From contig JBHGNT010000014.1 of assembly GCA_043228905.1 (NCBI GenBank), positions 13,392,001 to 13,456,000 of the forward strand: a stretch of DNA of 64,000 bases, given 5' to 3'. The notes beneath the pieces were generated by a model. It made no database searches. It saw only the letters and a list, made by a program, of their open reading frames with translations, and was not told the origin of the DNA. The translations under genes were made by a program, and so were the position numbers. This DNA is from Azolla caroliniana. Taxonomy: Eukaryota; Plantae; Polypodiophyta. The number at the start of each line of letters is the position of its first letter. Within the stretch, counting starts at the first letter, position 1. Of this stretch, positions 10,501 to 54,339 are shown piece by piece.

Positions 10501-11091
10501 CTCCTGAGTCGACAAACCATACATTATCAGACGAGGAGGTGCTTATCTGACCTTGTGCCGACACCGAATGAGCTTTGTGCCTCATTACGAACATTCCACC
10601 ATGGTCGTCATAATCGGAATTTGTGGTGTAATTTGTGAGTTGTCAACTGGTCGAAGCCAACTCTCATTGCTTCTTTCGGAACTCCACTTCGTAGTGGCCG
10701 AGTTTCGACATAACCGGGTCGATTGGGCTTTCTTAACTCTCGAAACCAAGCTTCATGAGACGCCATATGATTGTGTTGAGAGATCAAGCTCAATTTAGTT
10801 TAGTTAGTTAGTCAACAATGTAACTTCGTAGTTACCTAGATTGAATCTAGTTAGAAGTGTTGACTATAACGCCTTAAATAAGACCTTGTACTTAAGTGAG
10901 ATATTCTAGATCCTTCACTCCTAAGTACATTTAATATAGGACTTACACATTAGTACCTATATTCTACTCACACATGTGCACCTTTGCACATATGATGTAT
11001 ATATACCTCATTGTGGGTATTTTTGTATTTGATGATGATAATGCTAATTTAATATACTTACTCATCCCCCATCTTGTGTTGTTCATAAGTG

Positions 11092-11145
<54 letters not shown>

Positions 11146-12202: not shown

Positions 12203-12391
12203 CTAAGTGTTCATGATGTCGATTTCTTCTCTGTTGCTTAAACTGGTTTTGTTGATCGTCAGTGTGTAGCTCAGCATAGTTGAAAAAACTCGATTGGAAA
12301 ACCACACACGCTAATACCATGTAAAGAATGAGAGGCGTAGGTGATGTTGTGTAGCGGAGCTAAACTGTGTCAGTGTGTGTGCACTTGTAGG

Positions 12392-12447
<56 letters not shown>

Positions 12448-12636
12448 TGAACAAGAAGCGATATTGGTAAAAAAAATAGAATACATCCAACAGTATCTAA
12501 GTTACAAAGAGTTGGTTTAAATACCAACTAGTCTAGGGCAAGTGCCCTTTCTACTAATTACAAAACTAGCATAGTATGATGTCCAGTGGCTAGTGTGAAC
12601 ACTATCTTTATGGGAAGTTGAGTTCGATTCTCAACA

Positions 12637-12836
12637 CCTTACAAAGAAACCACCGTGTGGTTTATATAGGTTTTACAATGTGGGTGTGGTCATTTCACAC
12701 TTGGTTGCCTATTGGCTTATCTTTTCCTCTATTGGTTCTTACTACTTCCCTTTTGTGTATCCTTCTAGTTACTTGGTATCCTTGTTGATGCGTTCTTCTT
12801 CATGACAAAGGTATGATGCGTTCCAATTGCTTAACA
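12637..12836 (-). mobile_element. Right part of the split Athila-like solo LTR
   Basis: tgtggtttatatag...ccttgttgatgcgttctt...gcttaaca matches 28460-28616. Confidence 0.75.
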
Positions 12837-22956: not shown

Positions 22957-25196
22957 CGGTACTTCTCTTCCCATCCGGAGGGACATGTTTCCCAATAGTT
23001 TATTAGAGATAAAGCGGTTGCATATAGGAACCTTTTTGGCATGCCTTGGTAATCTTTAACCATAGAGGACAACCCATATGTTATAAAGAACATTCTCTAT
23101 GTACTAACATACACGCATATCAACAGTTGAAAATTAAAAATTAAAAAGTTTCAATTAAAAACATAAATAAATAATAGAAATGGGCAATGATTGTACAAGA
23201 GTGATGCAATTAGAAATGGGCAAAGCGATGTGTTCCTACATTGATAACACCCTATTATGTGATAGTATATGAATGTCGAGATGGAGCATCTATCTGTCCT
23301 TGTTGTCTTCCTTGGCAATATACAATCACAAAATTGAAATTTGTGTAAGAAATTGTTGCGAATGAGCATGTCCCTAGAGCATTTGAAAGTGCTTTTGTAT
23401 GATGTGCATGTTCACCAATTTCTACAACAATTACAAAAGTATGGTGTTTATGCATATAGGAGCATGATGTGCATGTTCGCCAAGTGTTATAACAATTACA
23501 AAAATATGGTCTCTATGCTCAATTCAAGAAGCTTTAATTGCAATGTGGTAGACTAGTAAACACCATGATCCATGCGACGTGTGTGGAGTCAAGGTGGAAG
23601 AACTGCCGAAATCTCAAACGAGCTTGGAATAACAAATCAAAAGGGTGTTAGAAACCACCGACAACAAGATGCAATGAAACTGTTTAAACTTGAGGATATC
23701 CCTCAGATAAATCTTACCAAAAATCCTACATCTTTAACTTCTTATAAATTTTATAATCTATTATGTAATGCCACTGGTTATTGAATTGGGATCATTTAAA
23801 ATGTTTTGGTTTGTGATTTTGAAATTGGCGCAAGAAGTTACATTATGTATTTTATCCAAGATTTACGAAAAGACAAGTTCTTGAATTATTGGTCTGTAAA
23901 AACCACACTATCGAAAGAAGAGTTCATCGTGAGATTCTTTTTAGATTTTTCGAAATGTGATTCTGATCATCACATGAGAAGTTGAAGCCTTCTACTCCTC
24001 CTCGAGCCTTCTCCTTCTCCAATGTTCGAAAAGGAAATAAAATAATAATATGAGTGTACAGGGCTAATGTGCCACATAGATGTAATCATGCAAAGCAAGA
24101 TTTGACCTGTGCATCTATAGAGTTAAAAGCATTGTATTTATTAATAGACAAACCCTTTGCGCACAAAATCAAATATAACAATTTGAGTCCGCAACCCATC
24201 CTCTTTGGTTAAATTCTCCGATGGTCCCACTTCAGTTTCACACACACCTATGTAACTTTGTAACAACACTTCCACTTAAGTGGGCCATTAAGTGCGTTTT
24301 TTCAGAGGTCAAAGTCGAGATAAAAAGAAAGATACTACCTCATGACAATTACATCAAATCAAATTGAGATCATGTTCTAAACATTTAAAAACAACAATAT
24401 CTATCAACAAAAATCATATTTCTAAGTCTTTCTCATTTCATACCAAAATCATGTAAGGTCATTTGCCTACTTTTAGCTACATGCTTAGAAAAATAACAGT
24501 AAAATTTGACTCTTGAATGATTCTATTAGCACTTGATAAATTTGATTTTACTTGCTTTGTGTTTTCTGAACTCAAATATGTTGTTGCCATGATCAAATTG
24601 AGCATGCGTTCACTATCAACAATATGTTGCAATGGTTCGAGAATAATTGTTGAGAATCAAGCTCAACTTGGTCTAGTGTGTGAACTCACCTTGAGAGTGA
24701 ATAGACATTCCAACGGTTAAGAGTCACCATTATGTCACCACTTTGTATTCTAGCATTTAGTATGAGTCATAGAATCATATTCTATGACACATAACTTATG
24801 AGCTTTCACATTCCCCATGCTCCATGAGTCTTGTAGTTAATGAAGAGAGAGGGTGACTATATAAAGCACCCTCCTCCCACCTTGTATAATGTTGAGTCTT
24901 TCTCCTTTATTAATACACTTTACCTTACGTATTCTTTGTGTCTTCTCCTTGTCTCTCTCACTCACACACACTCTCTCTCTCATACACACACAGTTCATAT
25001 CTATTCTGCTGCACAGAATCCATCTCTTGATTCTTTACATGGTATCAGAGCAATTTGGTAGGTCGATCTAGCCCATTCGCCTCATTGTGATCGTGTGTTG
25101 TGCTCCACGCTGACGACCAAGAACCGGCTCATCGCTATCATGGCTTAGCTACATAGCTCGCATTCAAAGAGAGAAAAAGAAGAAGGAGAATCAACA

Positions 25197-28049
25197 TAGC
25201 TCGCGCTCTCCCTACCGAGAAGTTGGATCGAAACAACTTCGCATCTTGGGAGTACAAGATGCACCAATACCTTGTCGGACAAGGCTATTGGAGCTACATC
25301 AAAGGAGAGCACGAAGACCGACTTGCCGAAGCGGCTCCCGGATACGCGACATGGGAGCAGGCCGCAAGCCATGTGATGTATTGCTTGGCAACATGTGTTC
25401 ACGATCACATGCTTGGCTACATTCGCGAAGCCAAGACGCCGAAGGAGGCATGAGAAAATTTACGAAAGATTTTCGCGCCGAACACAACCGCAAGAAGGCT
25501 TCAACTCCGCCAAGAGTTGAACAACATTTAACAAAGGGACATGTCCATCACGACATACACCTCAAAGATCAAGGAGCTTTGCGATTCGCTCGGCTCAATA
25601 AGCGTAAATATCGACGATGATGAGATGGTGCAAATATGCCTCGGTGGCCTCGCACCACGGTTCGGCGTGATACGAACCGCCATTCTAGCACGGGAAAAAT
25701 CTCCCTCCTTCTTCGAGCTCCAATCAATGCTATTGGTCGAAGAAAACTACGTGCGTACAAGGAGCAATGAGTCGGAAGGCCACATGCTCTACACGCACTC
25801 GAACGGAGGAAGAGGACGCAGACGAGCAAGAGGCCGATTCGGCCAAGGACAAGGTGGACGAGGTCCGACCTACGATAACAACTCCCAATTTCGGCCGCAA
25901 AACGGAAGCTAACGAGGAACTTTCGCAAGAAGGGGAAGCTTCCACTCCGGCCCGAGCCGTCAAAACGCAACTGAATGCGGATATTGCGGAAAGCTCGGCC
26001 ACCACGAAGAAGAGTGCCCAAAGAAGATGCGTGAATCGGCTTCCACAAGCCGACAACTCACGAATTACGGGCACAATTCCGACTACAAAGAGTATAGTGG
26101 AATGTACGGGCACAACTCCGACTACGAAGATCGTGGCGGAATGTATGCACGCAACTCCGACCGTGGCGGAATGTTCATGATGAAACATAGAGCAAACTCT
26201 ATGTCGGCCTCTACCTCAACTAGTGCCCTCAATTCGGAGGACGTATGGTTTGTTGACTCCGGAGCCTCAAACCATATGACATCTCATAAAGAATGGTTTC
26301 TTGAACTTTGAGAGCTGGAGCGACCTGGTTATGTCGAAACCGGAGATGACACTATGCACCCGATTCGGCACATCGGCAATGTTCCGTTCAACGAAAGAGG
26401 TAAGCAAACATACATTAAAAATTTCTTGCATGTTCCCACCATCATGTAGAATTTGGTATCGGTTGGCCAAATGATTGAGCAAAGGATCCAAGTACAATTC
26501 GACCAAGAAGGGTGCTTCATCGAAAAAGAGCGCCGAATCATCGCGCACGGAAGAAGAGAGGGCCGGATATTCATTCTCGATTCACACGAGATGAAATCCG
26601 CCATGTTCGCAAAAAGCACGAAAGCCGACTCCGACATAGAGCTATGGCACAAGCAAATCGGCCACATCAATCTCAACAAATTCAAAGCAATGAAATCGAA
26701 AGGAGTCTTCATCGGACTCCCGACATTCAAAGAGAAGGAGATTGAAGGTGTATGTGAAGCGTGCCAATTCGGCAAGCAACACCGACACCCATTCCCGAAA
26801 GAGCAGAACGTGAGTAAAGGCCTACTCGACGTAGTCCATTCCGACGTATGGGGACCGGCGTAGACGGTTACATTCGTTGGATGCCGATATTACGTGCTCT
26901 TCATCGACGACTTCTCTAGGCACACTTGGATCTACCCGATGCGGCAAAAGAGCGAAGAGTTCGGACACTTCCAAAAATTCAAGAATGAAGTTGAGAAAGC
27001 CACGGGCCGTCATGTACGATGCCTTCGATTGAATGGCGGCAAGGAGTACTTCTTGGATGATTTCACGACGTATCTCCAAAAGGAAGGAATTCAGCGAGAA
27101 TTCACTTGCCGACACACTCCGCAACAAAACGGAGTAGCCGAATGCAAAAATCGGCACATTCTTGAAGTAGCGCGGGCCATGATGAACGAGAAGCACATGC
27201 CCAAGTCATATTGGGCCGAAGCTGCAAATACTGTCGTCTACCTAATGAACCGGTGCACAACATCGGGTGTGCACGAACTTACTCCGCACGAGAAGTTCTT
27301 CGGAATGAAACTGGACCTATCGCATGTTCGGATATTCGGCTCCATTGCGTACGTGCACATCCCCGACGAGAAGCGTCAAAAGCTCGACCCGAAGTTGAAG
27401 AAATGTATCCTCGTAGGATACTCACTGGAGCAAAAGGGGTACAAGTGCTACAACCCCTCAACTCGAAAATCTCGCGTAAGTCGAGACGTCATTTTCGACG
27501 AGTCCGCATCCTGGTACGCACTAGAGACAACTTCGACTTCGATTCTGCTCGACCCGGATTCCGCCGAAATAGAGATAGAAGCCGAAGATCGACTAATGCG
27601 CATGTTTGAAGAAAGCCCAATTACGACAAGGCTTAGTGGGCCACAAGATCCCTCGAGCGATCAAAGCATATCTCGGCCGAGTCCGAAGATGGACAAAGGC
27701 AAGGCGAAAATGACGGAATATGAAGACGATCGCTTCGACGACAATGAGTCGACTCACTCACTCAACAGTGAGTTCGGCGGCTTCGATGTACCAATCGGAG
27801 CTAAGAAAGCCCTCATCTCTGCAAATGAAAAGCTCCGTTGCTCCACCCGTGAAAAGAATCTGGTCAGCCGATTCGGCTACAATGACTACATGGCATATCA
27901 CTATGCCTTTATGATGAAGGTGGAGGCAGTACGCGAACCAGAAACATTTTCCGAAGCAGTCAAGGATCCACGATGGATAAAAGCCATGAACGAGGAGATG
28001 CAATCACTACGCAAGAACGAGACGTGGGATGTCGTTCCCACCTCACCAC
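25197..28049 (+). pseudogene. Copia-3 gag-PR-INT (5' part of the polyprotein)
   Basis: DRNNFASWEYKMHQYL, CGYCGKLGHHEEEC knuckle, WFVDSGASNHM protease, FIDDFSRH..TPQQNGVAE integrase. Confidence 0.93.
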
Positions 28050-28627
28050 TGTTAAGGATCTATGTATCGATGGAGTAAGCTCCTCGATATCGTGGCGGGG
28101 TTCGGACTGGCGTATACCCTCTTGATGGCGAATCGAGCGGAGATGGTTGTCAAATACCTCCGAGCCTCACACTCACTCAATGATTAGTAAATGATTAAGC
28201 ACGATATCTCTCTCACTCTCTCAAGCTCTCTCTCATAGACAATAGATTAATAGATATAGACAATAAGAAGCAAGAGTATGTCTATTATTAACCCTCTTTG
28301 CTAAGAGGTCTAGCACCAACAAGGAGAGAGATTAGTGTTCTCTAACTCAACACTTCACTAATCTCTCTTAAGCTCAAAGGTTACAAGAAGGAGGAAAGGA
28401 AGTTCTAGCTCTAATCAATAGGAGATCTTTACAAATGGGAGAACCCCCACAAAGCCACTACTATGTGGTTTATATAGTTTCACGTTTAGGGTATGGGCCT
28501 TTCACATTTGATCGTCTCTTTGCTTTCCTTTCCTCTTGTTGTTTCCTCTTCGTACTACGTCCTTGTTGATGCGTTCTTATTCGTGACTGGTTGTGTTGTT
28601 ATCCCAACGCTTAACATCCCCCCCAAC

Positions 28628-31600
28628 CTAATGAGTGCACACTTCCGGGTGCACTGTGGGAGGGGAGCTTCGGGCGTCGGGGGTGAGTAGAATTGAGTAG
28701 GGGGGTTCGTCGGGGGGCGGGTGGCCGCGGAGATGATGGCGAACACGACGGATGTTCAATGGTGGTGGCCGGATTTCCTGCAGTTGGTCGGTTGTTGTGA
28801 AGAAATCTTTCTTGGGGTTGGTGAGCCAGATGTAGGTGTTGTGGCCGGTGAAGGGAGAAGGGGGGTTTCGACTAAAGCTTATGTAAGCGGGGAAAAAATG
28901 TGTGTCGATCATGGTTTCAAAATCCCGTTTGTAGGTTGCGGGTGGAGTATGTTGACGCGGGTCCAAAGGCCGACTAGTTGGCGACGAGTTGGACCTTTGT
29001 TCAAATCGAAGGCGAGGCCCCACGCTGGGTGGTTGTGCCGTTGGAAGGGGGGGGCTTCGTATGGGCCAGAGTCAAGGAGAATGAGTAGAAGTTGTAGAAA
29101 ACGAAGGCTGGCTTGAATGTTAGGGTTCGGGACGTCGAGGTATGTACGTAGGAATCGTCGCATGACCGGGATCATGTTGGGTTCGGTGGGGGATGTGTGC
29201 GGGGGTCGAGGGAACAACGTCCAGTTGAATTGAAGAGTGGGTAGGCGTGCCTTGGCGGCGCGAAAATTGGGCCATGGCCAATGACGAGGAAGGGGAAAAA
29301 AGGTGGGGCTGGTGCGCAGCTCGGGGGGGTGGAGGGCGAGCCATTCGCGGAAGGATGTGTGTGCGAACCAAGGGAGACGCCATGGGGGTTGGGTGCCGGG
29401 AGGTTCGAGGAGGGGGTCGACGATGGGGTGGTGCCACCCTCGAGTGGGGATGGGGTTTGCGGTTGCCCAAGTAGACATCTTATCGCGGTAAACATGGGGG
29501 TAAAGGAAGATGTCGACTTGGGGTTTGGAGGCGACTTCGGGGTAATAGTTGTAGAGGCGGGTGAGGATTAGGAGGGTCTCACAGAAGTTGAACTCCTAGG
29601 GAATGGGGGCTGCAGACTGATTGTCAAGACGAGTGTCCCAACTGGTACCACTTTCGATGCAATCAAGGGTGGTTTAGAGGTTGTGGGTGAGTTGGTAGCG
29701 GTCGACCAAATCAGCGTAGAAGGCCGCAACGTTGAAGCGGGCGCTCGAGGTGTGGAGTAAGGGAGGTGTAGTGAAGATGGGGAGGGGTAGTTGTTGGTGG
29801 AGCATGAGGTGGGCGAGGGGATGGTTGAAGGGGAGAGCTTTGCGGAGGATGGCCTCCGTGAATGTCCGACCGGGGTGGGTGACGACCCGTGTGTGGAGGG
29901 GGAAAGGGTCGGGTGGTGGGGGGGGAAGGGGGTGAGCCTAGGGGGGTGTGCGAAAGGGGTTGTCACCGAACATGGGATGTGTGTGGTCGGGGACATGGTG
30001 TTCACTGAGGTGAGGGTGTGGGGGCGAGTGGTGAGGGGGGAAGGGAAGTGGGCTAGTAGGTGGTGGGGGTGCGGGGGGGGGGCTTGGAGGCGGGGAGGAG
30101 GGAGGGTGAGGGCTAGGAGGTGGTTGGGTGTCGGGTTCATCAGGTGAGTCATGGTCCCACTCTAGGTCGATCTCTGGGGGGGGGGGAGCACGAGCACGAG
30201 CCTCATCGAACATCCTGAGTTGATACTCGCGGGAAACATCGAGGTATAGGGCTAATTCCGGTATGTCATCAGCCTCGAGGTCGGTGGGCCAGTTGAATGT
30301 GGCATATTCGATGCTGAATATGTGAGTACGAACCCCGACGTCCCAGGCGGTTTGCCAAGCGCGTATTAGCCAGAGGAAACTGAAAGGGGGTACGGAGGTC
30401 GTTGTGTTTTCCAATAGGGTGCGGGTGCGGGTGTCGGCGATGTGGTGTAAGCGCACCAGTGTTGGGAAGAGGTGGGCCAGCTGGTCTTCGGTGACTTGCA
30501 TCGTGACATCATAAGGGTAGGTGAAATAGATCAGGTTGGAGATATCTAAGTCGGGGGTGAGGGCGGTGTGAAGGTAGGCCATACCTTTGAGGAACAAAAT
30601 GGGGAGGTTTTGGGGGAAGAGGTCGCCGGTTGGGGGAGCAGGTTCTTCGGTGGCTTCCTAGTACAACATGAAGAGGGCAAGGGCGTGGTTGTCTTCGGGG
30701 AGTACTCGGATGAAGGTCTACCGGTCTGGGGGTGTGGTGTCGTCAAAGAATACGCGATGCGTGGCGGCTAACGACCGAAGGACGCACGTTGCTTGGATGA
30801 GGAGGGTGCGTGGTGTGCGTGGTGCAGTGAAAAGTTCGAAGAGCAGGGAGGTCGAGGTCACGTACACCGAGAGTGCCTGGATCATATTCAGAGAGCCAGT
30901 TGGGGGAAGGAGAGGGGTCTGAACGGTGGAGGGGTCCGTCATGCCGGGGTTGAGGGCGTGTTCAAGGGCGGCTTTGGACGTGCGGAGTTGAAGGATGTCC
31001 TTTTCGAGGTTGGCGCATTGGCGGCGGTGTTTGATGAGGAGACATCGGTTGCGTTCATTGGCGACTTCGACTTGGTGGACCATGGCGTCTCGTTTAGCCT
31101 TGAGGGTGCTGATCTCGCTCGTGAGTTGGTGAGTGGTGGCCATGGCGGCGGCCAGGGCCTCGAATCGTTCGGAGAGATCAGCCGTCACGGCTGCGAGTCG
31201 GGCCTCGGTCAGTTGGTGTTGGGTGGTGAGGCGGACGTACTCGGCCGAAAGTTCGGCATGTGTTTACGCTGCGCGTTCCGGGTCGTGGTGCCAGGTTGTT
31301 CGAGCTTGTTGGAATTCGTTAGCGAGTTGTTGGTGTCGGGTTTGTGTTGTCAGGAGTTCTTGCTTGACGAGGTCGTGGGCGGCCGCTCCGTACCTCGGCG
31401 GCCAAGATCTCGTTCCGTGTAGAGGTCTCGTGTTGGTCGGTGGCGGTCTGTTGAGCCTGTGCCTGAACTTGAAGTAGGCGACGGTTCACGACAACAGTCA
31501 TCTTGAGGAGGTCGGCCACCATGTCGGTTAAGGGTTTGGGGGGGACGGCGAGGGAGGGGGTAGGGTGAGTAGTAACTGCAGTGAGGGAGGTTGAGTAAGG

Positions 31601-32909
31601 CACGAAGGTCGGGAGTGGGGGTGGGGGTGGCAGTGGCGGGGTTGCCATCTGGGCCGGGCCGATGGTGGGTTGGAGGGGAACTGCCGGGGTTGCGGTCGAG
31701 GGCCAGTCGGGGGTTTCGGTGTCGGGAGCGGCGTGGTGGGTGAGTTTAAGGGGTCAGGGTTCGGGTTGTCATCGGTGGTGGTGGACGGGAAAGGTGGGGT
31801 AGTTGTGGCTGGGGCGGGGGAGAGGATTCGTGGGGTAGAGGGGTTGGCGAGGTGGGGGGAGGCGGGGCTGGCGGGTTCCGTTGGGTGCGCAAGATTGACT
31901 CAGTGGTGCAGTTGCGGGAACGCAGAGTCGTGGTTGTGTTCTGATGTGACACATAGTGGAAAGTAGTGGACAAGGCTTGGATTTCGGTGGGGGTGAACTC
32001 GTGTGTCTAGAATTCCTTGACACGATTCGTGATATCCTCAGGGGTGTCGAGGTTAGCTTTGGCTGACACGTGAGTGATCGGGGGTTGTTTGTGCGCCGGT
32101 GGCCGTGCCTGTTCACCTTGGTGTACCTGTTGTAAAAAGTCGCGTTCGAGTTGGCTTGGGACAGTGATCTTGCGGAAGCATTCTTGTCAGCATACGAAGG
32201 GAGGGGCGGGGGGTCCGATGCTGAACTTTCCGCACAAGTAGCGGGTGAGGAACCACGCGAAATTGACAGTCGATTTGGGCCGTGTGTGCCATTCTCGGAC
32301 CCAGCGGACAAGCTCGTGAGCCCATTGGACCGGTTGCGGATCATGTGCCCACTTGAGGTACTCACCGGTGATACGAGCGGTGGCATCGGTAGATGCGGTG
32401 TCGCCGATTTGGGCAATTGCGCTACAACGGTCGTGCAGATGGAGAGGGATTTCGGTGTAACGCCAACCTTCGCGTCCAGAATATTCGGCGTAGGCGACAT
32501 GAATGATGCCAGGGACAACCCCAGGGGTCCTCATGGTGCGGAAGGGGGCGCCCTCGAGGGGTAAATGCAGCGTAGCACAAACGTCGGCCGCGGTGAACTG
32601 GAATTTGATGGGGGGGGAGTCTGTGAAAGGCTGCATATCGACGTGGCCCGTATTGGGGTTGTACCCCATGAGGAAACGGTTGACCAGTTCGGGTAGGACG
32701 CCCCACAGCCCGATCCCAAGGAAGAACTTGAGGCCAAGTCGTGAGAGAGTGGTGAACACGTCGGGTTCAAGGTACTTGAGCTGTGTGGCGGCCGTGGGAA
32801 CCCGGTAAGTACATCGGGTATTGTTGAACACCACTAGAATGACTAAGGAACCGCACCCTACGTCGGGGTAGTATGCGTGGAGGAGTTTGATGAATTGGGG
32901 AGACGTCAT
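28628..32909 (-). pseudogene. Disrupted ~1,400-codon accessory ORF of unknown function (N-terminal plant-mobile/ATHILA-ORF-like domain, Pro-rich linkers, coiled coil)
   Basis: Consecutive minus-strand ORF pieces join through single stops (32187, 32007, 31264, 30718, 30658, 29938, 29674, 29596) and a few frameshifts; final stop is 11 nt from the LTR. Confidence 0.75.
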
Positions 32910-33071
32910 CGTTTGCAACCTGCGAGGAAAAATATTAGTATAGTTAAATGTGGTGACGAATCAGCTACGTCGGGGTAGTATGCGTGGAGGAGTTTGATGA
33001 ATTGGGGAGACGTCATCGTTTGCAACCTGCGAGGAAAAATATTAGTATAGTTAAATGTGGTGACGAATCAG
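32858..33071. repeat. Perfect 107-bp tandem duplication covering the splice acceptor and start of the accessory ORF
   Basis: ctacgtcggggtagtatgcg...gtgacgaatcag at 32858 and 32965. Confidence 0.9.
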
Positions 33072-33289
33072 CAAGTATGGGTAGTTTCAATAGATTCCCT
33101 GTTTTTTTTTTTTTGAGAGCAGGACGTGGAGTCCTAACTACAGAGTAACTCAGTTAAATGTGGTGACGAATCAATAAGTTCAGGTAGTTTCAATAGATTC
33201 CCTTTTTTTTATATTTTTTATTTATAGAGAGCGGGCCGTGGGGTTCTAACTACGTAGTAACGTAACAACTAAGAGTTACGTGGTCTAGG

Positions 33290-33515
33290 AGTTGGGCTCC
33301 TCGAACAACGCGTGGTTCAAGGAGTTGGGTTGGGTGTGGTTCGAGGGGTTCGACTCCTCGAACAACGGGCAGCTCGAGGGGTTGGGCTCCTCGAACACTA
33401 TGTAGTTTGAGGGGTTGGGCCCCTCGAACATTGTGTGATTCGAGGGGTTGGACCCCTCGAACAACGGGTAGTTTGAGGGGTTGGCACAGTGTTCGAGGGG
33501 TTGGGTCCCTCGAAC
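33290..33515. repeat. 33-bp minisatellite (EGPNPSNxxLF repeats) at the point where pol breaks off
   Basis: tcgaggggttgggctcctcgaacaac-type units, about 6-7 copies. Confidence 0.8.
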
Positions 33516-33559
33516 CACGAGGCGGAGTGGTCTGTAAACGGCCAACGACGTGGGGAGGG

Positions 33560-36500
33560 TGATCAAGGACGCCTCCTCGTCGGGCTGGAAATCTACGACT
33601 ATGAACACCGGTTTGGAGTCTGTCCCTTTCCCGAGGTTGATTTCTTTCACCCTTGCTAGTCCATCATAGACTTCTCCTAGGCCTTGGGGGTTGTGTTGCG
33701 GTCTCTTACAAGCCACTGCCCTACTCCCTTGTTAATAGAGTTTGAAATGCTCTGGGAAGTCCGCTTCCGTCACAGCCTCCTGAGTGGTTGTGACGTCACC
33801 CGGATGTGTGACTCGTTGTACCAGTTCTTCGTCCTTTACGTCTAGTTCTTTTCACCGGGGTCCCAAGGTGGTGACGTTGAAGCATGAGATTGTTTCTCCT
33901 TCCTCGTCACAACACTTTGTACCTATAGGGTACATTGCGTCGGTTGTGGCAAGAGCGTGCACGCAATTCCTCTCTGACGTCTCGGAAGTGACAGATTGGT
34001 CGTCTCTCTCACGTGCGTTCTCCTCTTTGGAAGTGGTGAGGCTTTGAGGAAAGTGTTGGCCTCTGGTCAAGAGTTGAACTGTCTTTGTGGGGTTGCATGC
34101 TAGGAGGTTGGTCTCGAACTCAATGGTTTCTGACCAATCATCTACGAGAGGGCTGCCTTCTTGTTCATGCACTTTTTGTGTGTATGCTTTGATGCGGAAG
34201 GTTTTGTTGTCCTTTCGCATATAGATTATATTGTTCCCAAAATCTATTACTAGGCGGCTTATACGTAGGAATGGTCTTCCTAATAAGCACTCGTAGGCTA
34301 CATGGTTGGACAATCTTGTGACAACGAAGGTGAGATTGAACTCCACTCCGTGGATAGTGAAGTGATGCGCATGAATCATGCCTTCCGGTCTTTGGATGGA
34401 CCCATCTGCCATTCGTAGTTTGACATCGGAAGGCAGCATTCTTGGGCTCCCCCACTTACACGAACATTCGTAATTGACGATACTTACCCCTGCTCCGGTG
34501 AAAGTGATGGTGTCACACACCTTACCATTGACACAGATTGGTACAGTGAAACTAGTGTCATCGCTCTCGAAGTGAGATTCGTGGACGTCGACTGGCGGTC
34601 CTTTGGGTTGTTTGAGGACTGTGGACGTGTGAGGAGTGTGGGTGTGTATCCCTTCACCATATCTCGCCGATAGGCCACCATTGAGGCGTGAGAGGACGTC
34701 GTGCCACGGTTGAATGTCGAGTTTTAGTTCTTCGAGGGTGAACTCTATTTCCTTGGCGAGTAGAGGTCGTAGCAGGGGGTTGTCGGTGGTGAAGGTGCCA
34801 ATGTAGCTCTGCACTTCGCGTAATGTGAGTCGCAATCTTAAATTTAAGATTTGTTGGAGTAGGGCTGTGTTGACCTCTTTGATCAGGGTAGGATGGCAAG
34901 TGCGGGTGTCGGTTGGTGTGACAACGAGGGGAGGTGAGGGGTTATTCTTCTAGTTGGTCGAAGTTTAAGCTGGGGAGGCTAAGTGATTTTTCAAACTGTT
35001 CGTGGTGTATGAGTTTGATGTATTCTTCTACTTTTTGTTTCTCAGCTACTGGGTTTGGGTATGCCGCTAGGTGCGCCGGCAGTTCTTGATTCGGATTGAC
35101 AGGTAATGTTTCTGTGTCTCCCTCCAGTTCTTGATCTTGTTTTGAGGTCTGCGTGGAATTATTCTTTCTAGATTTGCGTCTCTTACGTGCGGTCATGGGG
35201 AGACCTTGATCTTGGTATTTTAAATTGTGCGCTACTCGTTGGGCTCGTGTGATGACATTGGACGCTCGTGGATGGTACAATGGACAACAGATTTGTGCCG
35301 ACCCTTTTCTTCTTTTCCGGGCAATCAGGTACTAGGTGTTCTTTACCACACCCTGGGCATGATGCATCTCTTTGGAACCATTCGATGAGGTCTTGCGACT
35401 GTTGGGTGGGCCCTTGCGCAAGTGGTTGCGGGGGCGTGTCGAGTGAGAGGTGTCGTGGTCGTTGGGCCATCCGGTTGTAGTACTCATGTTTGGTTGGGCA
35501 CTTGCTAACCATATGTGGGCCTTGGCAGTTGAAGCATTTCAATTCTGACCTCCTTAGACCATTGTTGTTGCGGTATCCCATAGGGGTTCCACGTTGTTCC
35601 CCTCTCAGGACGTACACTGGTATTTGGTCGCCTTCAAAATCCACGAAATGGGACAACACCTCTTCTTAAATGCCATACTCCTGGTACGAGTCTTCATATT
35701 CGGGGGTGCTCGCTCTGACCTGGGTTTGGTTATCTGTGGTATACTCCAGTTCAGCGAGGCGGGCGCCGATGCGCGGTAGTGGGGGTTGTTGAGGGAGTAT
35801 CGCTGGTAGTGGTGGGCGACTAAGTGGTGGGGGAGAGCGTGGGTGTTCCACCATTGGCGTTTGGTCGTACCATCCAGTGGGGGCTTGCCAGCAGTTCTCT
35901 TGCGTATGCATCACGAAAGCTTTGCACCACTTATAGAATTGAGGCCGTCGTTGATGAAGGAGGGGACACTCATGTCCCGTGTGGTGTCCGTGACATACCG
36001 TGCACCTTACATTTTCTCGTTGGGCATATGCTTGGGGTCTTTCTATACGGGGTATTCGCGGTGGTGTGGGTAGAGTAGGGGTGGAGTCGGAGGATTTCTC
36101 GCGGTTGTTCGTGGGTGCGTGAGTGGGTATTTGTAATCCACTCATCAAATCTTCAAAGGTCATCACTACTGTGTAGGCTTCAGCAAACGATCGACACATC
36201 TTGGCAATCAGGAAATTTTGGAGTGTCGGATCGAACAACCCATTAATGAAACGGCTCATCAACTTGTCATCTGACATCTTGTCGTTCGGACTACAATGAT
36301 GATGCAGGATTTTCGTGTGATGTATGTAGTCCCTAACGATTTCGTTCGCTTCTTGCTTGAGGGCGAAAAGTTGATCAATCGGGTTCTATTTATTCCCTCT
36401 GCAAGCGAATTTTATCAAGAAATCATCGATGACATACTCGAAATCGGCGGCGATGTCTTCATTCAAGGTTCGAAACCAGATTCCGGCTTGGTCATCAAGT

Positions 36501-37165
36501 GTAAGTCCAAACGTGGCTACCTTAGTGATCTCTGTGAGGGGTTCATAAGTGCGACAAATCTGTTTGAACCTCTCGACATGGTCATAGGAATCGCCGAAAC
36601 CGAGGAAACAAGGTACTAGTTTAGAAATGGAAGCACTCTTCCCACTGTCATTTGTGAGGTTTCTCGGATGGTCTGTGGGTGCTCACTCTTTTTCCATCAA
36701 TGCTACGAGAGTTTGGATGGATTGTAGCGCTAGTGCGAGTTCGGCGTTTGGAGGTGTAGGGGTAGCTTGGTTAGGTGTAGGGATTGTGCCCATGTGTGGT
36801 AGTGTCGGGTGTCGTTGTGTGCGGGTTTCGTTCGGGCTATCGCCCGTTGTGCTCGAACGCGATACGGGGTTGTGCTTCTGACTTCCGCGATGCATGTGCG
36901 ACGATGTTCCTAGGAGGTGAAGTTTTTGTTGCACTCGTGCGAATCTATCCTTCCTTTCTGCCAAAGCGGCTTCGATATCTCGAGTGGTGCTTTCCGGTTG
37001 TCCTCCTTTTGCAAGTTGTACCGTCCATAGATTGATTTCATGTTCTATCACCTGTAACTCTTGCGCTGCGTCTCGTATATGTCGTTCTACACTGAGTGGG
37101 TCTACCATTGGGCTCTCATGTAGTGGGATAAGTGCTTTAGTTCCTGGGCTCGATGGGAGGTTCAT
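33560..37165 (-). pseudogene. Gag (Retrotrans_gag + four CCHC-type knuckles), aspartic-protease-like region and pre-RT linker of the nested element
   Basis: DQAGIWFRTL..KLMSRFINGL; CTVCHGHHTGHEC, (Y)KWCKAFVMHTQENC, CFNCQGPHMVSKC, CPGCGKEHLVPDC; DTITFTGAGVSIV..LRMADGS..YECLLGRPFL; KEINLGKGTDSKPVFI. Confidence 0.85.
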
Positions 37166-37334
37166 GTTTGGTAGTATCCCCAGAGTTAGCCACCCTCGTG
37201 GTACTGAGTCAGGTTAGGTGGGACAGCATCGTGGGTTTGGTTGGTTTGCGTGGACTCCTTCGGGCATGTGGGTAGGGTTTTGAACATCTCTGTCCATGAG
37301 GATCCGGCCATGTTTTCCGGTCAAGCTTTTATAG

Positions 37335-37850
37335 GTTCGTCGAAGGATGAATATTAGTCGAAGGCTGAATCTTCGTTGAAGGTTGAATCTTCGTCGAAGG
37401 CTGAATCATCGTCGAAGGATGAATATTAGTCCAAGGATGAATCTTCATCGAAGGCTGAATCTTCGTCGAAGGTTGTTCTTTCGACGAGCTTTGCGTGGGA
37501 AATTCAAACTTTTTGGCGCCAACGGTCGTTTCGTGACCCGTGGAGTGACCGTAAGCTGCAAGACTCGCGGTGATTATGCTTGCCCCGTAACAACCTAATC
37601 TCCACAATGTTTAATGTTAACTGAGCGAATGAACGAAAAATCGACTTAATTAACCTATGGAATAATCAGAAAAAACGGAAAATGGAACTTAATTAAACTA
37701 TGAAATGATAGAAAAAAACAGAAAATGGAACTTAATTAAACTATGAAATGATAAAAAAACAGAAAATGAAACTTAATTAAACTATGAAATGATGAAAAAA
37801 AAGAAAATGGAACTTAATTAAACTATGAAATGATGAAAAAACAGAAAATG
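37335..37850. repeat. Two tandem arrays in the 5' UTR of the nested element (18-bp and ~43-bp units)
   Basis: cgtcgaagg(a/c)tgaat(ctt/attag) x~7 at 37338-37470; aaaatggaacttaattaaactatgaaatgat..aaaacag x4 at 37680-37850. Confidence 0.8.
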
Positions 37851-37937
37851 GTGGTTCTCTTGTGATTTCTTCCTTCGTTGAGTGGTTTGCCTCCAAGTTT
37901 TTGACTACTCAAAAATAGGCTTCAAGCATCGATCGTA

Positions 37938-37955
37938 TCCCCGGTAGCGGCGCCA
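37938..37955 (-). promoter_or_regulatory. Primer-binding site, tRNA-Asp type (Athila-like)
   Basis: TGGCGCCGCTACCGGGGA 6 nt downstream of the 5' LTR; Athila consensus is TGGCGCCGTTGCCGGGGA. Confidence 0.8.
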
Positions 37956-38529
37956 AATAGATGTTCAGGATCTATGTATCGATTGAGTAAGCTCCTCGAT
38001 ATCGTGGCGGGGTTTGGACTGGCGTATACCCTCTTGATGGCGAATCGGGCGGAGATGGTTGTTGGATACCTCCGAGCCTCACACTCACTCAACGATTAGT
38101 AAATGATTAAGCACGATATCTCTCTCACTCTCTCAAGCTCTCTCTCATAGACAATAGATTAATAGATATAGACAATAAGAAGCAAGAGTATGTCTATTAT
38201 TAACCCTCTTTGCTAAGAGGTCTAGCACCAACAAGGAGAGAGATTAGTGTTCTCTAACTCAACACTTCACTAATCTCTCTGAAGCTCAAAGGTTACAAGA
38301 AGGAGGAAAGGAAGTTCTAGCTCTAATCAATAGGAGATCTTTACAAATGGGAGAACCCCCACAAAGCCACTACTATGTGGTTTATATAGCTTTCACGTTT
38401 AGGGTATGGGCCTTTCACATTTGACCGTCTCTTTGCTTTCCTTTCCTCTTGCCATTTCCTCTTCGTACTACGTCCTTGTTGATGCGTTCTTATTTGTGAC
38501 TGGTTGTGTTGTTATCCCAACGCTTAACA

Positions 38530-39987
38530 ACCACACAAAAAGGCGATCGGATGCAGATGCATTTACAAAGTGAAGTACAATGCCGACGGTTCCGTCAACC
38601 GCTATAAAGCGCGACTCATAGCGAAAGGCTACGCCCAAACGCACGGAGTTGACTACAAGGAGACCTTTGCCCCATTAGCAAAGATGACAACGGTACGGAA
38701 TGTAATTGCACTTGCCGCGGCAAAAGGGTGGCACCTCCATCAAATGGACGTCAAGAACGCCTTTCTACAAGGCGAATTAGAAGAGGTGTACATGATACAA
38801 CCACCCGGCTTCAACTCAAGCACCCATCCGAAAGTTGTATGCCGATTCAAGAAGCCACTCTACGGCCTCAGGCAAGCATCGCGTGCTTGGCATTCGAAGA
38901 GAACGCAATATCTTCATCAAATCGGCTTCCGTATGTCAAAATCGGACAACTCCCTCTACATACGAAGTGATTCTGCAAGTCCGATCGTCATCATCTTATA
39001 TGTGGATGGCCTAGTCATTGGAGGTGAGCATCTCGTCGAAATCAATAAAGTCAAATCCCTCCTTTCCGAAAAGTTCGAGATGACGAACATGAAGGAGCTC
39101 CACTACTTCCTCGGCATCAAGGTAATTCAGACTCAAGCCGGAATCATGATCTCTCAACGGCACTACATCCTCAACTTGTTATACAAGTTTGGGATGGCTG
39201 AGTGCAAATCCGCGGCAACCCCGCTCAATCGCAATCTCAAACTAGATGTGAACTCCGGCACCAAAGCGTGTGAACCGACTCAATATCGGCAACTCATCGG
39301 GAGTCTCATCTACCTCACGATCACTCGACCCGATCTCAGTTATTCAGTCAGTCTCCTTAGCCAATTCGTGCAAACACCGCGTGATACTCACTTGGATTGC
39401 GCTAAGCGAGTTGTACGATACGTGAGCGGCACAATGGATTGCGGCATCCTCTACAAGACCGCGATGCCAATACGACTCGAGGGGTACACATACGCCGATT
39501 GGGCCGGCTACAAAGCTGATAGAAGATCAACCTCCGGATTTGTTTTTTCCCTCGGCAGCGGAGCAATATCCTGGAGCAGCAAAAAGCAACCAACCGTCGC
39601 TCTTTCGAGCACAGAGGCGGAATACAAGGGCACGACAGTGGCCGCATGTGAAGCCATATATGGCTCAAAAGGATACTCAAGGATCTGGGCGTACCCATCA
39701 AGGATCCGACTTCCCTTTACTGTGACAACATGAGTAGTATCTATCTGGCTCGGAACCCGGTGTTCCACGCGCGGACAAAGCACATCGAAGTGCACTATCA
39801 CTTCATCCGAGAGCGCGTTCTAGCTGGTGATGATGACCTACAACACTTCAGCACCAATCTTCAAACAGTCGACATCTTCACTAAAGCCTTAGGAACTGAC
39901 AAGCTATGGCAATTCATGACTGATCTCAGATTGACGATCCCTGACCTGCCAAGCTTGAGGGGGAGTACTGAAGACGCTACGCAATAA
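38530..39987 (+). pseudogene. Copia-3 RT-RNaseH (3' part of the polyprotein)
   Basis: RYKARLIAKGY, HQMDVKNAFLQG, LYVDG (for YVDD), YADWAG..RRSTSG, HARTKHIEVHYHF. Confidence 0.95.
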
Positions 39988-40843
39988 CGCGTGGATTCCG
40001 CAAACCGCACACACTACGCAATAACGTGTGTTTTCTGCAACCGCGCAACGAAGCCGCGAAGAGCCAACCTACCGTGCAAAGCCGCGAAGAAAGACGCAAG
40101 CCGAAGCACAGACTTCGCAACTACGCGCAACGAAAGCCAAAGCACGGATTCCGCAACTCCGCATAAAGCGAGTCAACGGGGACTCCGGAACGCGAGTCGA
40201 AGCGGATTTCGGATACCATCTGAAACCGACCCGACTTGAGCTTGAGGGAGCGTGTTCAGAATCAAGCTCAACTTGGTCTAGTGTGTGAACACAACTTGAG
40301 AGTGAATAGACATTCCAATGGTCAAGAGTCACCATTATGTCACCACTTTGTATTCTAGCATTTAGTATGAATCATAGAATCATATTCTATGACACATAAC
40401 TTATGAGCTTTCACATTCCCCATGCTCCATGAGTCTTGTAGTTAATGAAGAGAGAGGGTGACTATATAAAGCACCCTCCTCCCACCTTGGATAATGTTGA
40501 GTCTTTCTCCTTTGTTAATACACTTTACCTTGCGTATTCTTTGTGTCTTCTCCTTGTCTCTCTCTCTCTCATACACACACAGTTCATATCTATTCCGCTG
40601 CACAGAATCCATCTCTTGATTCTTTACAATAATCATATCTTCTTCTCTTACGCGTCCATGCAGATCTGGTATGTCAACTAGCTTAGAATTTGAGTTTATA
40701 TTTTCATAATATGTGAGTGGTTCATTTGTGTTGGAAGCTTGTGTGGAAGTGTCTACTATAACTTCACCAATCCTTTAAGTAGATTTTACTTAGGTTTTTT
40801 TTATTCCTTTTCATATGCATTGACACATTCCATGATTTTATCT

Positions 40844-43800
40844 TGTTGAGCGGCAAGCTCAACTGGAGCCGGTTCGGCTGAAAAGCCTGAGCCGGTAAGT
40901 GAGACAGATCGGTATGCCGGTGAGCAACCAAGCCGGCAAGCTACAGAGTCGGTGAGCAGAGAGCCGGTTAGCCGGATCCAGAAGTAACCGGAAGCCTAGT
41001 AATAAGTTAGATTACTAGGTAGTTATAGTCTCAGAGTTAGTGTCAGATGCTCGTGTGACCATTGAAGTACACAGTACTTCTGTCAGTCCGCGTAGGACTT
41101 GTATAAATAGTGTTACTGAGCACATAGTATGTAAAGAGTGTTTACTATTATTTTGAATATAACTTTTACATTCTGCTCTCTCTGTCTCTCCCACGTACTC
41201 TCTGCATATTTTCTGTTTTCTCTGCTTCTCTAACGCTTCCGCAAGCAATCGTTCACATGATATCAGAGCACGAGGGTTGAGAACCTCTATTGCAGACATT
41301 CGCCTTGAGAAGCAAAACCCAACAGGTCGCAAGAATAGACACTGAAGCGGTTATGCACAGAGGTATGGCAAGTTCACTTCCCACAGAGAAACTCGACCGG
41401 AGCAACTATGTGTCTTGGTCGTACAAAATGCATCAGTACCTATTGGGGCATGTGTATTGGAGTTTCGTGGAACGAACGAACGAAACAACACCTAATACGA
41501 CACACGAGGACTTCCCAACGTGGGAACAATCGGCAAGCAGAGTGATGTACTGCTTTGTGTCCAGTGTCGGGGATCAGCTTCTGAGCCAAATTCGAGACGC
41601 CAAGACGCCGAAGGAGGCTTTGGGGAAACCTGAAGAAGGTTTTCACCACAAGCACTACAGCCCGAAAGCTGCAACTCCGACAAGAGTTGAGCAATGTCCG
41701 ATAGAGGGACTTGTCGATGGCTGATTATACGTCCCGGATCAAAGAGATCTATGACTCGCTTGCCTCTATTAACGTCACCGTAGAGGAAGACGAGATGGTA
41801 CATGTCTGTCTTAGGGGCTTGGCGTCTAAGTACAAAGCCTTTCAGACGGCGGTTTGTACAAGGGAGAATACGCCGTCATTTTTTGACTTATAGTCGATGC
41901 TCCTTGTAGAGGAGAACCACGCCGGTGTGTCAACTAGCGCACCCACTGACAGCTGGATGTTGTACACAGAGGCGGATCGGTCCCGTGGGCGTGGTGGACG
42001 AGGCAGGTCGGCACGCAATGGAGGTGGCCGGCACAGAGATCGTGCTGACAACAATTCCGGACCCTCTGGGAGCAGGGGGAGTCAATGCGGTACTGGAGGC
42101 CGGCAAAACAAATCCGCAACGGAATGTTGGTACTATGGCAAGAAGGGCCACAAAGAAAGCGAGTGCTAGAGAAAGCGCACCGATTCGGACAAATCTGGAT
42201 CCGGCAAGGCTGGCAAGGATGGCCGGCAAAGCTTGCACTACGCAAACGAATCGGGAGGATCCAAGAACGGTAAGGGGCCAGCCTTGGTGATGAAGCACAA
42301 GGTGAACTCAATGAAGAAGACCACTTCCAAATCGAAGGAAGTGTGGTAACGTTCATTCCGGCGCGTCAAACCACATGACGAGCCACAAGGAGTGGTTCTC
42401 TTTGTTGGAGAAACTGGATCAACCAGGAGTAGTCAAAACCGGAGACGACACTCCTCACCCAATCGTGCATGTCGGAGAAATCCCTTTGAGCCACGTCGGA
42501 CAGAAGGGGAAGCTGATGAACGTGTTACACGTTCCAACAATCATGAAGAACCCGGTGTCGGTCGGACAGATCGTTGACCAGGGGATGCAAGTGCGGTTTA
42601 CGCACCTTGGGTGCTTCATTGAGGATGAGGGTGAAGTTATTGCGCAAGGGCGCAAAGACAAGAGGATGTTTATCCTTGACACCAATGACATCGGCACCGC
42701 TCTATTCGCAAAAGGACAGAAGGTCGAGTCAGACATCGACCTATGGCACAAGCGGATAGGCCACGTCAATTACGGGAGGCTTCAAGACCTGCGAACGAAA
42801 CAAGTTGTTTTCGGTTTGCCAAAGTTTAGCAGCCGGAGAGCCCAAGTATGTGAAGCTTGCCAACTCGGGAAACAACACCGGCTTCCATTCCCCACTAAAC
42901 GAAACCGGAGCCGTAACAAGCTCGACCTTATCCATTCGGATGTGTGGGGACCGGCACAGAATGTTAGTCTTGGCGGGAGTCGATATTTCGTCTCCTTCAT
43001 CTACGACTATACACGGCACACATGGATCTACCTCATTGAGCGGAAGAGTGAAGTCTTCGAATGTTTCCGGAGCCTCCAGAAGATGGTGGAACGGGAATCA
43101 GAGAGGAAGATCAAATGCCTGTGGTCGGATGGCGGAAAAGAATATTTTTCCGGCCAATTCAACAGCTATCTGCAGCAAAAAGGAATTCGGCACGAGTACA
43201 GCTACAGATACACACCGCAACAGAACGGTGTCGCCGAAAGGAAGAACCGGTCGCTTGTTGATGCGGCAAGGGCAATGCTGGAGGAGAAGAGCATGCCCAA
43301 ATTCTACTAGGCGGAGGAGGTCCGGACAGCCGTCTACATCCAGAACCGGATTGGTGACAAGGTGTCAGCTCACGAGCTGTATTTCATCTGTGCATGTGCC
43401 GGATGAGAAGCGGAGGAAGCTGGATGCAAAATGCATCCTCGTCGGCTATGCTCAAGAGCAAAAGGGTTATAAGTGTTATAACCCTCGGACAAAGCAGGTC
43501 CAAGTTAGCCGAGATATCGAGTTCGATGAATCGGCATCATGGTATTCCTTACCGACTCCAACTTCCGATCCCGTGCCGATGCCGGAGGATGAGGCTAGTG
43601 AGCCACAACCGGCCCAGGTAGAGGATGATGAAGCGTGGACTCAAGATGAGAGTCTGGAATTGTTTCGGTTGAGCGGACCGAACGAGAGACTGAGTCAATC
43701 TGACTAGTCCGATGAGGAACCGGTGAGTAGTGGAGACTTTGTCGTGCTCTCCCCGCGCAAGGAACCGAGGAGACGGTTCACACGCAAAGAGAAAGGGAAA

Positions 43801-51147: not shown

Positions 51148-52218
51148 ATGCACGCACCACACACACAACACACACACACACACCAACATGTTGTGTGCCC
51201 AACCTTATCCTCACACCTCACATTATGTTATTAGAAGGGCTCACAAAATAAATCCTATTTGATAACCGAACTAGAGTACCTACTACCTCATAATCAGAAT
51301 CTTTAGTGGAAAAATAGTTAAAATTCAAGGATATCGAGTTCGATCGAAACATTTTCCCGCTTTTAGGTAAAGGACAAAGACTACGAAATGCCAGAAACTC
51401 CATTGCTTAAGTGAGATAGCTAAGATGTACAGCACCCCTTGAATTGCCCCTTGAATTAGTTGTATATATAATATGGAGGAATATCTTATGATTGGGCAAA
51501 GGCCCACCTCATCCTTGTGCAATTTTTAGAGTGGTCTTGATTTTGAGCACTTGTATTCTTATCAAATATGGGCTTTAGAGTAACTCTTCAAACTAGGCCC
51601 ATCCCCCCCAACCCCAAGAACAACAAACATTTATATAGCCAACAACTTTCGGAACATAAAAAATGATGTGGTTCCTCCAAACGATTAGAACACAAAAATG
51701 TTAGATTGATGTTGTGGGCCTTTGACATTGGAAAAAACGATCGCAAACTTGCGGAGTCCTACCCACGAGAAAGACAAAAATAAATAAAGAAATCTCGTTG
51801 ATTCCGTGCTCCTCATTTTCACGAGTTCTCGGGGATGGTCCCATTTAGATTCCGTGCTTATAAATGACGGGAATTGCCAACAATTTATGCTTATATGTAT
51901 GTATATGTGAGGAAAGAATGAAGATTGGTTTCTTGGGTGTCTTCAAAATTTAGTGGCATATGCTTGATCCCCCAAGTCACTAATGAAAAGATTAGCTTAA
52001 TCGGCTTCTTAATCTCGATCAATTTTGCTCATAATCGGAATGACCGCAAGCTCGATCGATTTTGCTTGTAATGGGAGTCACAATCTTGATCAATGTTGCT
52101 TGTAATGTAGCACTTGTAATTAGCAGAACTCTGAGATTGTAGGGTTATTGTTATTTGTTGGGTTTAAGATTCATTAACCCCTGACTAAGGATAGTTCAGT
52201 ACTTTGGAGAACCAAACT

Positions 52219-54021: not shown

Positions 54022-54339
54022 GTCCCTCCCTTCCTACCTCTCTTTCATTTACAGGATCAAATACCTATGGCATTGTATCGAATTTGCTCTTTATCCAATC
54101 GAGTTCCTTCCTTCTTTGATTGTTATGATACTTGAATCCATCATATTCAGCTTTATTCTTGGGCATCCTAGCATCTAACTTTACTTGCAACATTATTTTC
54201 TTTCCAAAGAGTTATATATACCATTTCCATATGTTTTTATTAGATTGTGGATAGAAAATCCCTTCGTTTCTTCCATGGCCTTTCTAAACTTTGTGTTGAT
54301 TCTATGTGTGTGCTTGTGTTTGAAAAATGAATGGTGCAG

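Follow-up and report, generated by a model that had tools for sequence, protein, structure and literature searches.

How does a long terminal repeat (LTR) retrotransposon come to hold a gag and a protease (PR)-like region and no reverse transcriptase (RT), RNase H (RH) or integrase (INT), and what is the long coding-like sequence that stands in their place? Both questions are raised by an element at 28050-38529, on the minus strand of a 64,000-nucleotide stretch of Azolla caroliniana contig JBHGNT010000014.1 (positions 13,392,001 to 13,456,000), referred to below in its entirety as the window. An earlier note made from the sequence had proposed a trans-mobilised lineage that supplies its own capsid and a large accessory protein and borrows pol from a helper. 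The explanation favoured here, at somewhat better than even confidence for all of its parts together, is that this is an Athila-type (OTA, non-chromovirus) Ty3/gypsy element of the gag-protease-only kind. That the copy transposed when it had already lost the missing part of pol is given a slight preference, and its large extra open reading frame (ORF) appears to belong to the lineage as a whole. The features that make the element recognizable as such are:

28045-28049, no strand: left target-site duplication (TSD), ACCAC, read directly; identical to 38530-38534
28050-28616, minus strand: 3' LTR (in element sense), 567 bp, TG..CA, 97.5% identical to 37962-38529
28617-28627, minus strand: PPT (polypurine tract) GTTGGGGGGGA, directly 3' of the extra-ORF stop codon
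37336-37851, minus strand: 5' leader, containing two tandem arrays, one of an 18-bp unit (37336-37472) and one of a 41-bp unit (37637-37851), from repeat analysis
37938-37955, minus strand: primer-binding site (PBS) TGGCGCCGCTACCGGGGA, with a 6-nt AT-rich spacer (TCTATT) between it and the 5' LTR
37962-38529, minus strand: 5' LTR (in element sense), 568 bp, 97.5% identical to 28050-28616
38530-38534, no strand: right TSD, ACCAC, read directly

The intact LTR pair flanked by ACCAC, the tRNA-Asp-type PBS (37955-37938) and the PPT (28627-28617), all proposed in the earlier note, are therefore real features of a complete LTR retrotransposon of 10.5 kb. The two LTRs differ by 14 substitutions (11 transitions and 3 transversions) and 1 indel, giving K=0.025; at a grass-like rate, from which that of this plant may differ, the insertion would date to roughly 1 Myr ago. 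The insertion point lies within the RT-coding region of a Ty1/copia element, and both flanks (an ORF with an integrase SH3-like domain at 26894-28078, and one with RVT_2 at 38570-39733) join into a single copia pol frame. Since the flanking ORFs belong to one Ty1/copia pol, this is a precise nested insertion. The host copia element extends over ~24648-40552, with LTRs near 24648 and 40253 that are 97% identical, an age close to that of the insert; a second copia element (~40844-46796, LTRs near 40844 and 46497, 96% identical) adjoins it directly.

What did the element look like before the loss? Relatives of its protease piece and of a 243-codon ORF at the start of the extra ORF were found in one ENA metagenome series only (ERZ10343xx-10344xx and re-assemblies). 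The same samples hold an orthologue of the PPR gene in the window that is 94% identical (93.7% in coding DNA, ~88% in flanking DNA), which indicates that these contigs derive from a plant closely related to the source of the window. The PPR gene itself (3486-5516, minus strand) is intact, with 676 codons, and that orthologue is its sole close relative; identities to named proteins, from a lycophyte, ferns and gymnosperms, are 30-44%, a range that may partly reflect word-based candidate preselection.

The most informative of these contigs, L022 (13,843 bp), reads in order: extra ORF (754 + 690 codons), PPT, one LTR, PBS, leader and gag-pol. Its gag-PR-RT-RNaseH-integrase region is a single 2,553-codon ORF in which Retrotrans_gag (amino acids 265-354), PR (927-1019), RVT_1 (1332-1489), RT_RNaseH (1551-1680) and Integrase_H2C2 plus rve (1788-1953) follow one another in the Ty3/gypsy order PR-RT-RH-INT. 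L022 passes the LTR without branching and has AT-rich low-complexity DNA at both ends; it looks like a collapsed assembly of LTR-interior-LTR, and a second contig, L006, likewise assembles through one LTR into PBS and gag-pol with no branching. L022 and the window element run collinear, at 72-84% identity, and the 3' LTR of the latter is 76-86% identical to the LTRs of L004, L006, L009 and L022. It shares with L022 the layout CAT TAG, GTTGGGGGGGA, then TG at the boundary of ORF, PPT and LTR. The 18-bp array between PBS and gag also persists in both (37336-37472 in the window, 5353-5743 in L022), despite a likeness of ~70% there. The one exception to collinearity is L022 9633-13843 plus 1-164, ~4.4 kb with RVT_1, RNase H, Integrase_H2C2, rve and a tail of 600 codons. 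Within this tail, after the integrase, lies a second aspartic-protease-like domain (~12481-12744) with DTG intact (gag-asp_proteas, E 1.3e-6).

Several characters place this lineage near Athila. ATHILA elements have the PBS TGGCGCCGTTGCC after an AT-rich spacer of 3-6 nt (bioRxiv 10.64898/2026.03.20.713144); the PBS of L022, TGGCGCCGTTGCCGGGGA, matches this tRNA-Asp form exactly, and that of the window element shows two transitions relative to it. In the Calypso/Diaspora group the tRNA-Asp PBS starts 5 bp after the LTR. No Chromo match was found in the L022 pol or its 600-aa tail. The aRH domain, whose presence defines Tat within the OTA clade (Neumann et al. 2019, PMC6317226), was sought in L022 between PR and RT, between RH and INT (108 aa) and after INT; there was no RNase H match at E up to 5, a search that a very diverged aRH could escape. 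The window element in turn has the structure of a gag-protease-only ATHILA: an LTR pair with TSD, gag and PR, with RT, RH and INT gone by one internal deletion.

The timing of this deletion can be judged in part from the sequence around it:

33549-33550, minus strand: pol-deletion breakpoint in the PR-RT linker, at codon ~1255 of the L022 gag-pol, where homology to RT-bearing relatives ends
about 33335-33499, minus strand: 33-bp minisatellite with a palindromic unit, ~4.4 copies, units 71-79% alike, without a match in any relative
32858-33261, minus strand: three ~105-bp units, two of which form a perfect 107-bp tandem duplication (32858-33072), from repeat analysis

The alignments to three independent relatives stop at almost the same point, 33550 for L002 and L022 and 33554 for L025, beyond which each of these contigs continues into RT. 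Homology thus ends ~40 nt before the minisatellite, here delimited as 33339-33484, in agreement with the earlier reading that pol stops after the KEINLG..KPVFI linker and is followed by a 33-bp minisatellite. Where L022 has ~4.4 kb of pol, 33549-32945 of the window is a 605-bp filler, made up of the minisatellite and the ~105-bp repeats, that matches nothing else among the relatives compared.

One possibility is that the element inserted full-length and autonomous, and lost RT-RH-INT later at this locus by illegitimate recombination or slippage, which would leave a private junction and no RT-less lineage. This is a serious contender, although we would put it short of an even chance. RT is present in each of the three relatives that extend across the homologous point, and an exact 26-mer across the 33550 junction has no match in the metagenome_contigs collection; tandem arrays lie right at the junction, and the perfect 107-bp duplication beside it, in which ~3 differences would be expected if it were as old as the LTR pair, shows recent instability and is probably younger than the insertion. 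(Included in the duplicated unit are an acceptor-like motif and the start of the extra ORF, from the ATG through codon 17.) However, divergence within the repeat filler, 12-29% for the minisatellite units and the third ~105-bp unit, greatly exceeds the 2.5% between the LTRs, which makes the filler older than the insertion, and the same type of derivative is common and mobile in ATHILA elsewhere. The RT-bearing relatives that cross the breakpoint, at ~77% identity, belong to another species and another subfamily, and for this reason do not refute an RT-less lineage.

A second line of evidence on the timing comes from the state of the coding regions:

34945-37290, minus strand: remnant of gag, interrupted by 4 stops and 2 frame changes; recognizable by half a Retrotrans_gag domain plus three CCHC knuckles (Pfam and motif match)
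33550-34934, minus strand: protease-like region and PR-RT linker (KEINLG..KPVFI), with 2 stops; catalytic DTG reads FTG (gag-asp_proteas)
28628-32909, minus strand: decayed extra ORF (3' forward eORF), 4.28 kb, collinear with ORFs of L004, L005, L006 and L022, with 11 stops

Gag and a protease-like region are present, as had been noted, in reduced form. The Retrotrans_gag match covers the second half of the domain (E 4.9e-5, 23.9 bits against a cut-off of 24.1) and a stop splits the domain; three CX2CX4HX4C knuckles remain; and the gag-asp_proteas match in a 327-codon piece (E 8e-5) is weaker than Pfam's cut-off. Where L022 has DTG the window copy has FTG, and the catalytic Asp is gone. The best protein-guided path through gag-PR uses frames -1, -2 and -3 with 6 stops and 2 frameshifts, and that through the extra ORF uses frames -3/-2/-1 with 11 stops and 2 frameshifts, which over 2,664 codons adds up to 17 stops and no fewer than 4 net frameshifts. 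Because of these stops and frameshifts and the FTG of the protease, the window copy is without coding capacity: judged by its reading frames it cannot make any of its proteins, and it is now inert.

Could it nevertheless represent a working non-autonomous element, with its own Gag, protease and accessory protein, that borrows only pol? The retention of gag, PR and the extra ORF while RT-RH-INT is gone would fit such an element, as would the purifying selection on the extra ORF in relatives and the first 243 codons of that ORF (32918-32187), which are still open in the window. This selection was measured between contigs of families that include RT-bearing members, however, and for this copy the proposal is refuted: the 6 stops and 2 frameshifts of gag-PR, the 11 stops and 2 frameshifts of the extra ORF and the protease without catalytic Asp contradict the claim of a self-supplied capsid and large accessory protein, and an excess of stops (below) implies a defective source copy. 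We therefore regard it as very improbable.

The number of stops is also informative about the source RNA. Decay was simulated at the LTR-implied rate, with transitions favoured to the degree observed and, as an option, G and C sites changing faster; the stop-free natural segments of three relatives, end to end, served as a proxy for codon composition. The expected gain was 3.3-5.9 stops, and up to 9.9 at the upper confidence bound of LTR divergence; the observed 17 or more occurred in at most 2% of the runs (P(>=17) <= 0.02). Since the stop count exceeds what the age of the LTRs predicts, the RNA from which this copy was made probably carried defective ORFs already, which points to mobilisation in trans. 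The excess is also more than decay after a full-length insertion would predict, although the frameshifts, at least 4, fit such decay, given 1 indel per LTR pair.

The extra ORF is the other unusual feature of the element. In the window, 32909-28628 consists of overlapping ORFs in several frames; the ~4.3 kb of coding-like sequence described up to the PPT is thus indeed coding-derived, but broken. In relatives it is open for 987 codons (L006), 1,007 (L004), 637 up to a stop (L005) and 754+690 (L022), and because the piece in L006 overlaps that in L005 without a change of frame, the natural ORF should have ~1,400 codons. It adjoins the PPT and 3' LTR in L004, L005, L006, L009 and L022, with its TAG directly against the PPT; L009, in which ORF, PPT and LTR are followed by unrelated flanking DNA, is for that reason a real genomic insertion. 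Compared between natural contigs by the Nei-Gojobori method, the N-terminal 245 residues have a dN/dS of 0.10, a proline-rich linker 0.29, a putative coiled-coil part 0.17 and the C-terminal 625 residues 0.16; for the open first ORF of the window against relatives the value is 0.06-0.11, and for the protease region, for comparison, 0.105. These values of 0.06-0.29 argue that the extra ORF is a real gene under purifying selection in the relatives. The idea that this giant gene is peculiar to a non-autonomous form is not borne out: L022, with full RT-RH-INT, carries the same ORF, which accordingly belongs to the lineage and not to the RT-less form.

The region between pol and this ORF is highly variable: L022 has a short AT-rich spacer, whereas in the L006 sublineage (L006 1-1338 and the upstream parts of L004, L005, L007 and L008) AT-rich non-coding DNA, at least 1.3 kb long and with ~340-bp direct repeats in it, lies ahead of the ORF.

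What might the ORF encode? Pfam gave no match for the window pieces or for the intact ORFs of relatives, and PDB sequence and profile searches with it gave none; a profile of its N-domain found no relatives in genome_contigs or viral_contigs. AlphaFold models of the N-terminal domain (19 sequences) and the C-terminal 637 aa (9 sequences) were of low confidence, with mean pLDDT of 36 and 32. The central segment of ~200 aa has weak matches to coiled-coil families. Across the intact relatives Kyte-Doolittle means over 19 residues peak at 1.35, the N-terminus lacks hydrophobic character and no transmembrane helix or signal peptide is predicted; lacking a hydrophobic stretch long enough to span a membrane, the product is not envelope-like. 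The predicted product is a soluble, coiled-coil-containing protein, neither an envelope nor a recent capture. A scan of 1.84 billion representative proteins yielded only one spurious match, one weak match from a legume, and fragments whose origin, wherever it was looked up, was a single metagenome series. Three candidates were set aside: a Plant mobile domain (PMD) for the N-terminal motif, for which Pfam had no match either in the window ORF (threshold E 1) or in any of the 19 family members searched (threshold E 10); a 1,131-aa match (P0020), spurious, to a bacterial Cna_B repeat protein; and a weak match in Senna tora (P0018) that tblastn did not confirm.

Another conceivable origin is that the 4.3-kb region is a piece of a host gene or of another transposon captured into the pol gap, making the element chimeric or transduplicating. 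The absence of retroelement Pfam domains from the region would suit a capture, as would junction filler repeats of no known origin. RT-bearing relatives and several diverged sublineages, though, have the same ORF at the corresponding place, with its end at the PPT, and no homologous host gene family turned up among the 1.84 billion representative proteins; a capture is hard to credit on this evidence.

The expression of the ORF may be approached through a motif at its start:

32920-32943, minus strand: splice-acceptor-like motif, 10 nt before the extra-ORF ATG, with a branch-point-like CTATACTAAT, a pyrimidine run and CAG/G

CTAAT or CTAAC followed by CAG is kept in nearly all of the diverged lineages aligned (L020 is without the CAG), and the sequence further upstream is unrelated. 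Because this acceptor-like motif is conserved, the extra ORF is probably expressed from a spliced subgenomic RNA. Splicing-based expression is reported for envelope-class plant elements (Vicient et al. 2001, cited in PMC1142308). A more speculative suggestion is that the ORF encodes a new accessory protein, other than an Env, restricted to this lineage, expressed by splicing and kept together with gag-PR by RT-less derivatives because it acts on their own RNA or particles, in packaging, nuclear entry, targeting or silencing suppression. We consider this doubtful. If true, the recurrence of gag-PR-only deletions far from Brassicaceae would indicate a general, selected route to parasitising autonomous Athila elements.

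The history that best accommodates these observations would run as follows. The ancestor would have had an LTR, a tRNA-Asp PBS, one gag-PR-RT-RH-INT ORF, an AT-rich or repeat-bearing spacer, the ~1,400-codon extra ORF, a PPT and an LTR. At some point in the lineage ~4.4 kb, from the PR-RT linker to the end of pol, would have been lost, the cis signals (LTRs, PBS, leader, PPT) all surviving. An autonomous relative most likely provided the proteins for reverse transcription and integration of the present copy, and integration would have produced the 5-bp TSD inside the copia element. The 4.3-kb "extra gene" would simply be the lineage's normal 3' ORF.

Several points weigh against this history or its parts. 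A single copy with the 33550 junction is available, and transposition after the deletion is a matter of inference. LTR gene conversion, or a faster C-to-T decay of the GC-rich interior, could inflate the excess of stops. In L022 the link from pol to the extra ORF runs through two AT-rich contig ends rather than continuous sequence, and a search for direct overlaps between contigs across pol, spacer and ORF gave low-complexity AT-rich matches only. A splice donor was sought in the leader, where no site matches 8 of the 9 consensus positions. The Athila placement draws on structure and the PBS, not on RT phylogeny, and PF03078 ("ATHILA ORF-1") has no match in the window pieces (E up to 1) or in the intact ORFs of relatives (E up to 0.01-0.1); since it occurs in only 16-29% of members, that domain is not essential for Athila.

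Elsewhere in the window there is an LTR of a related family at 6671-12836 (minus strand), older and 70-83% identical to the LTR studied here, and interrupted by a copia element whose own 168-bp LTRs lie at 7160-7327 and 12470-12637. It had been described as an older, related solo LTR. The relationship stands, but it has no adjoining PBS or PPT and no matching TSD (AAAAT against TGAGG), so it may be something other than a simple solo LTR. At 55914-57281, just downstream of a G-type lectin receptor-kinase gene (B_lectin/PAN at 52204-54135, kinase at 54331-55350), a 171-bp unit is repeated in tandem, with 8 copies that are 99-100% identical, and a fragment of a chromovirus-type Ty3/gypsy integrase tail (SH3_Tf2-1 and chromodomain) lies at 63116-63733 (minus strand). 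Rfam and tRNA scans of the window were empty.

How does the element compare with known systems? Non-autonomous LTR elements dependent on a helper include TR-GAG elements, said to be short and to encode only Gag, and LARDs, which reportedly have a long non-coding interior. The window element resembles both in its presumed dependence on a helper; it differs from TR-GAG, and falls outside that definition, in its 10.5 kb with a PR-like region and a 4.3-kb ORF remnant, and from LARDs in an interior that holds gag, PR and a large ORF, all decayed.

The env-like ORFs of Athila, Calypso and BAGY-2 are shorter, the extra ORF here being two to three times as long. This envelope class (Wright and Voytas 2002; Vicient et al. 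2001, PMC311225; PMC1142308) shares with the lineage a tRNA-Asp PBS a few bases from the LTR and a forward ORF between pol and PPT; a putative coiled-coil segment and probable expression of the ORF by splicing would be further points in common. The extra ORF differs from it in having no predicted transmembrane segment or signal peptide and no detectable sequence similarity.

Most OTA elements carry extra ORFs and repeat-rich spacers, the ORFs falling into hundreds of unrelated groups, mostly (79%) without known domains, and Neumann et al. (2019, PMC6317226) questioned whether they have any function. The extra ORF resembles the eORF-3'F class of REXdb for this clade (PMC6317226) as a large forward ORF downstream of pol with no known domain, and differs in its unusual length, in filling the interval up to the PPT and in its clear purifying selection. 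Its intact relatives define a large retroelement ORF family under purifying selection, without envelope features and with no detectable homologues outside one plant lineage, a result relevant to whether the extra ORFs in Athila/Tat elements have any role. The window copy itself is ordinary genomic debris; annotation tools based on RT would miss or misclassify RT-less copies of this kind.

The closest parallel is with the gag-protease-only ATHILA of Brassicaceae. Elements without RT-RH-INT make up 934 of the 2,322 intact elements in six Brassicaceae species, where they are the commonest intact form and recently active (bioRxiv 10.64898/2026.03.20.713144). In Arabidopsis, non-autonomous intact ATHILA are abundant, with a ~3-kb deletion over RT, RNase H and integrase in several unrelated families, suggesting a recombination hotspot in pol (bioRxiv 10.64898/2026.03.20.713144). 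Since this type has already been reported, the window element is a further example of it. As described by Wlodzimierz et al. 2023 (via bioRxiv 10.64898/2026.03.20.713144), the Brassicaceae elements likewise have intact LTRs, a 5-bp TSD, a TGGCGCCG..CC PBS after a short AT-rich spacer, gag and PR, one deletion from just after the protease that removes RT, RNase H and integrase, and a retained 3' ORF region. By comparison, the deletion here is larger, because pol in this lineage has a 600-codon tail after the integrase; a 33-bp minisatellite and ~105-bp repeats lie in the gap; and the 3' ORF has ~1,400 codons and no PF03078. The RT-less form is known here from a single copy, whereas the Brassicaceae elements are reported as recently active. 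What appears distinctive is the size and non-envelope nature of the 3' ORF, the repeat filler at the deletion and, less firmly, a host outside the well-annotated plant groups. The occurrence in a distant plant of the same derivative, with gag and PR kept and RT-RH-INT lost at the PR-RT linker, fits a recombination-prone point in the ATHILA pol.

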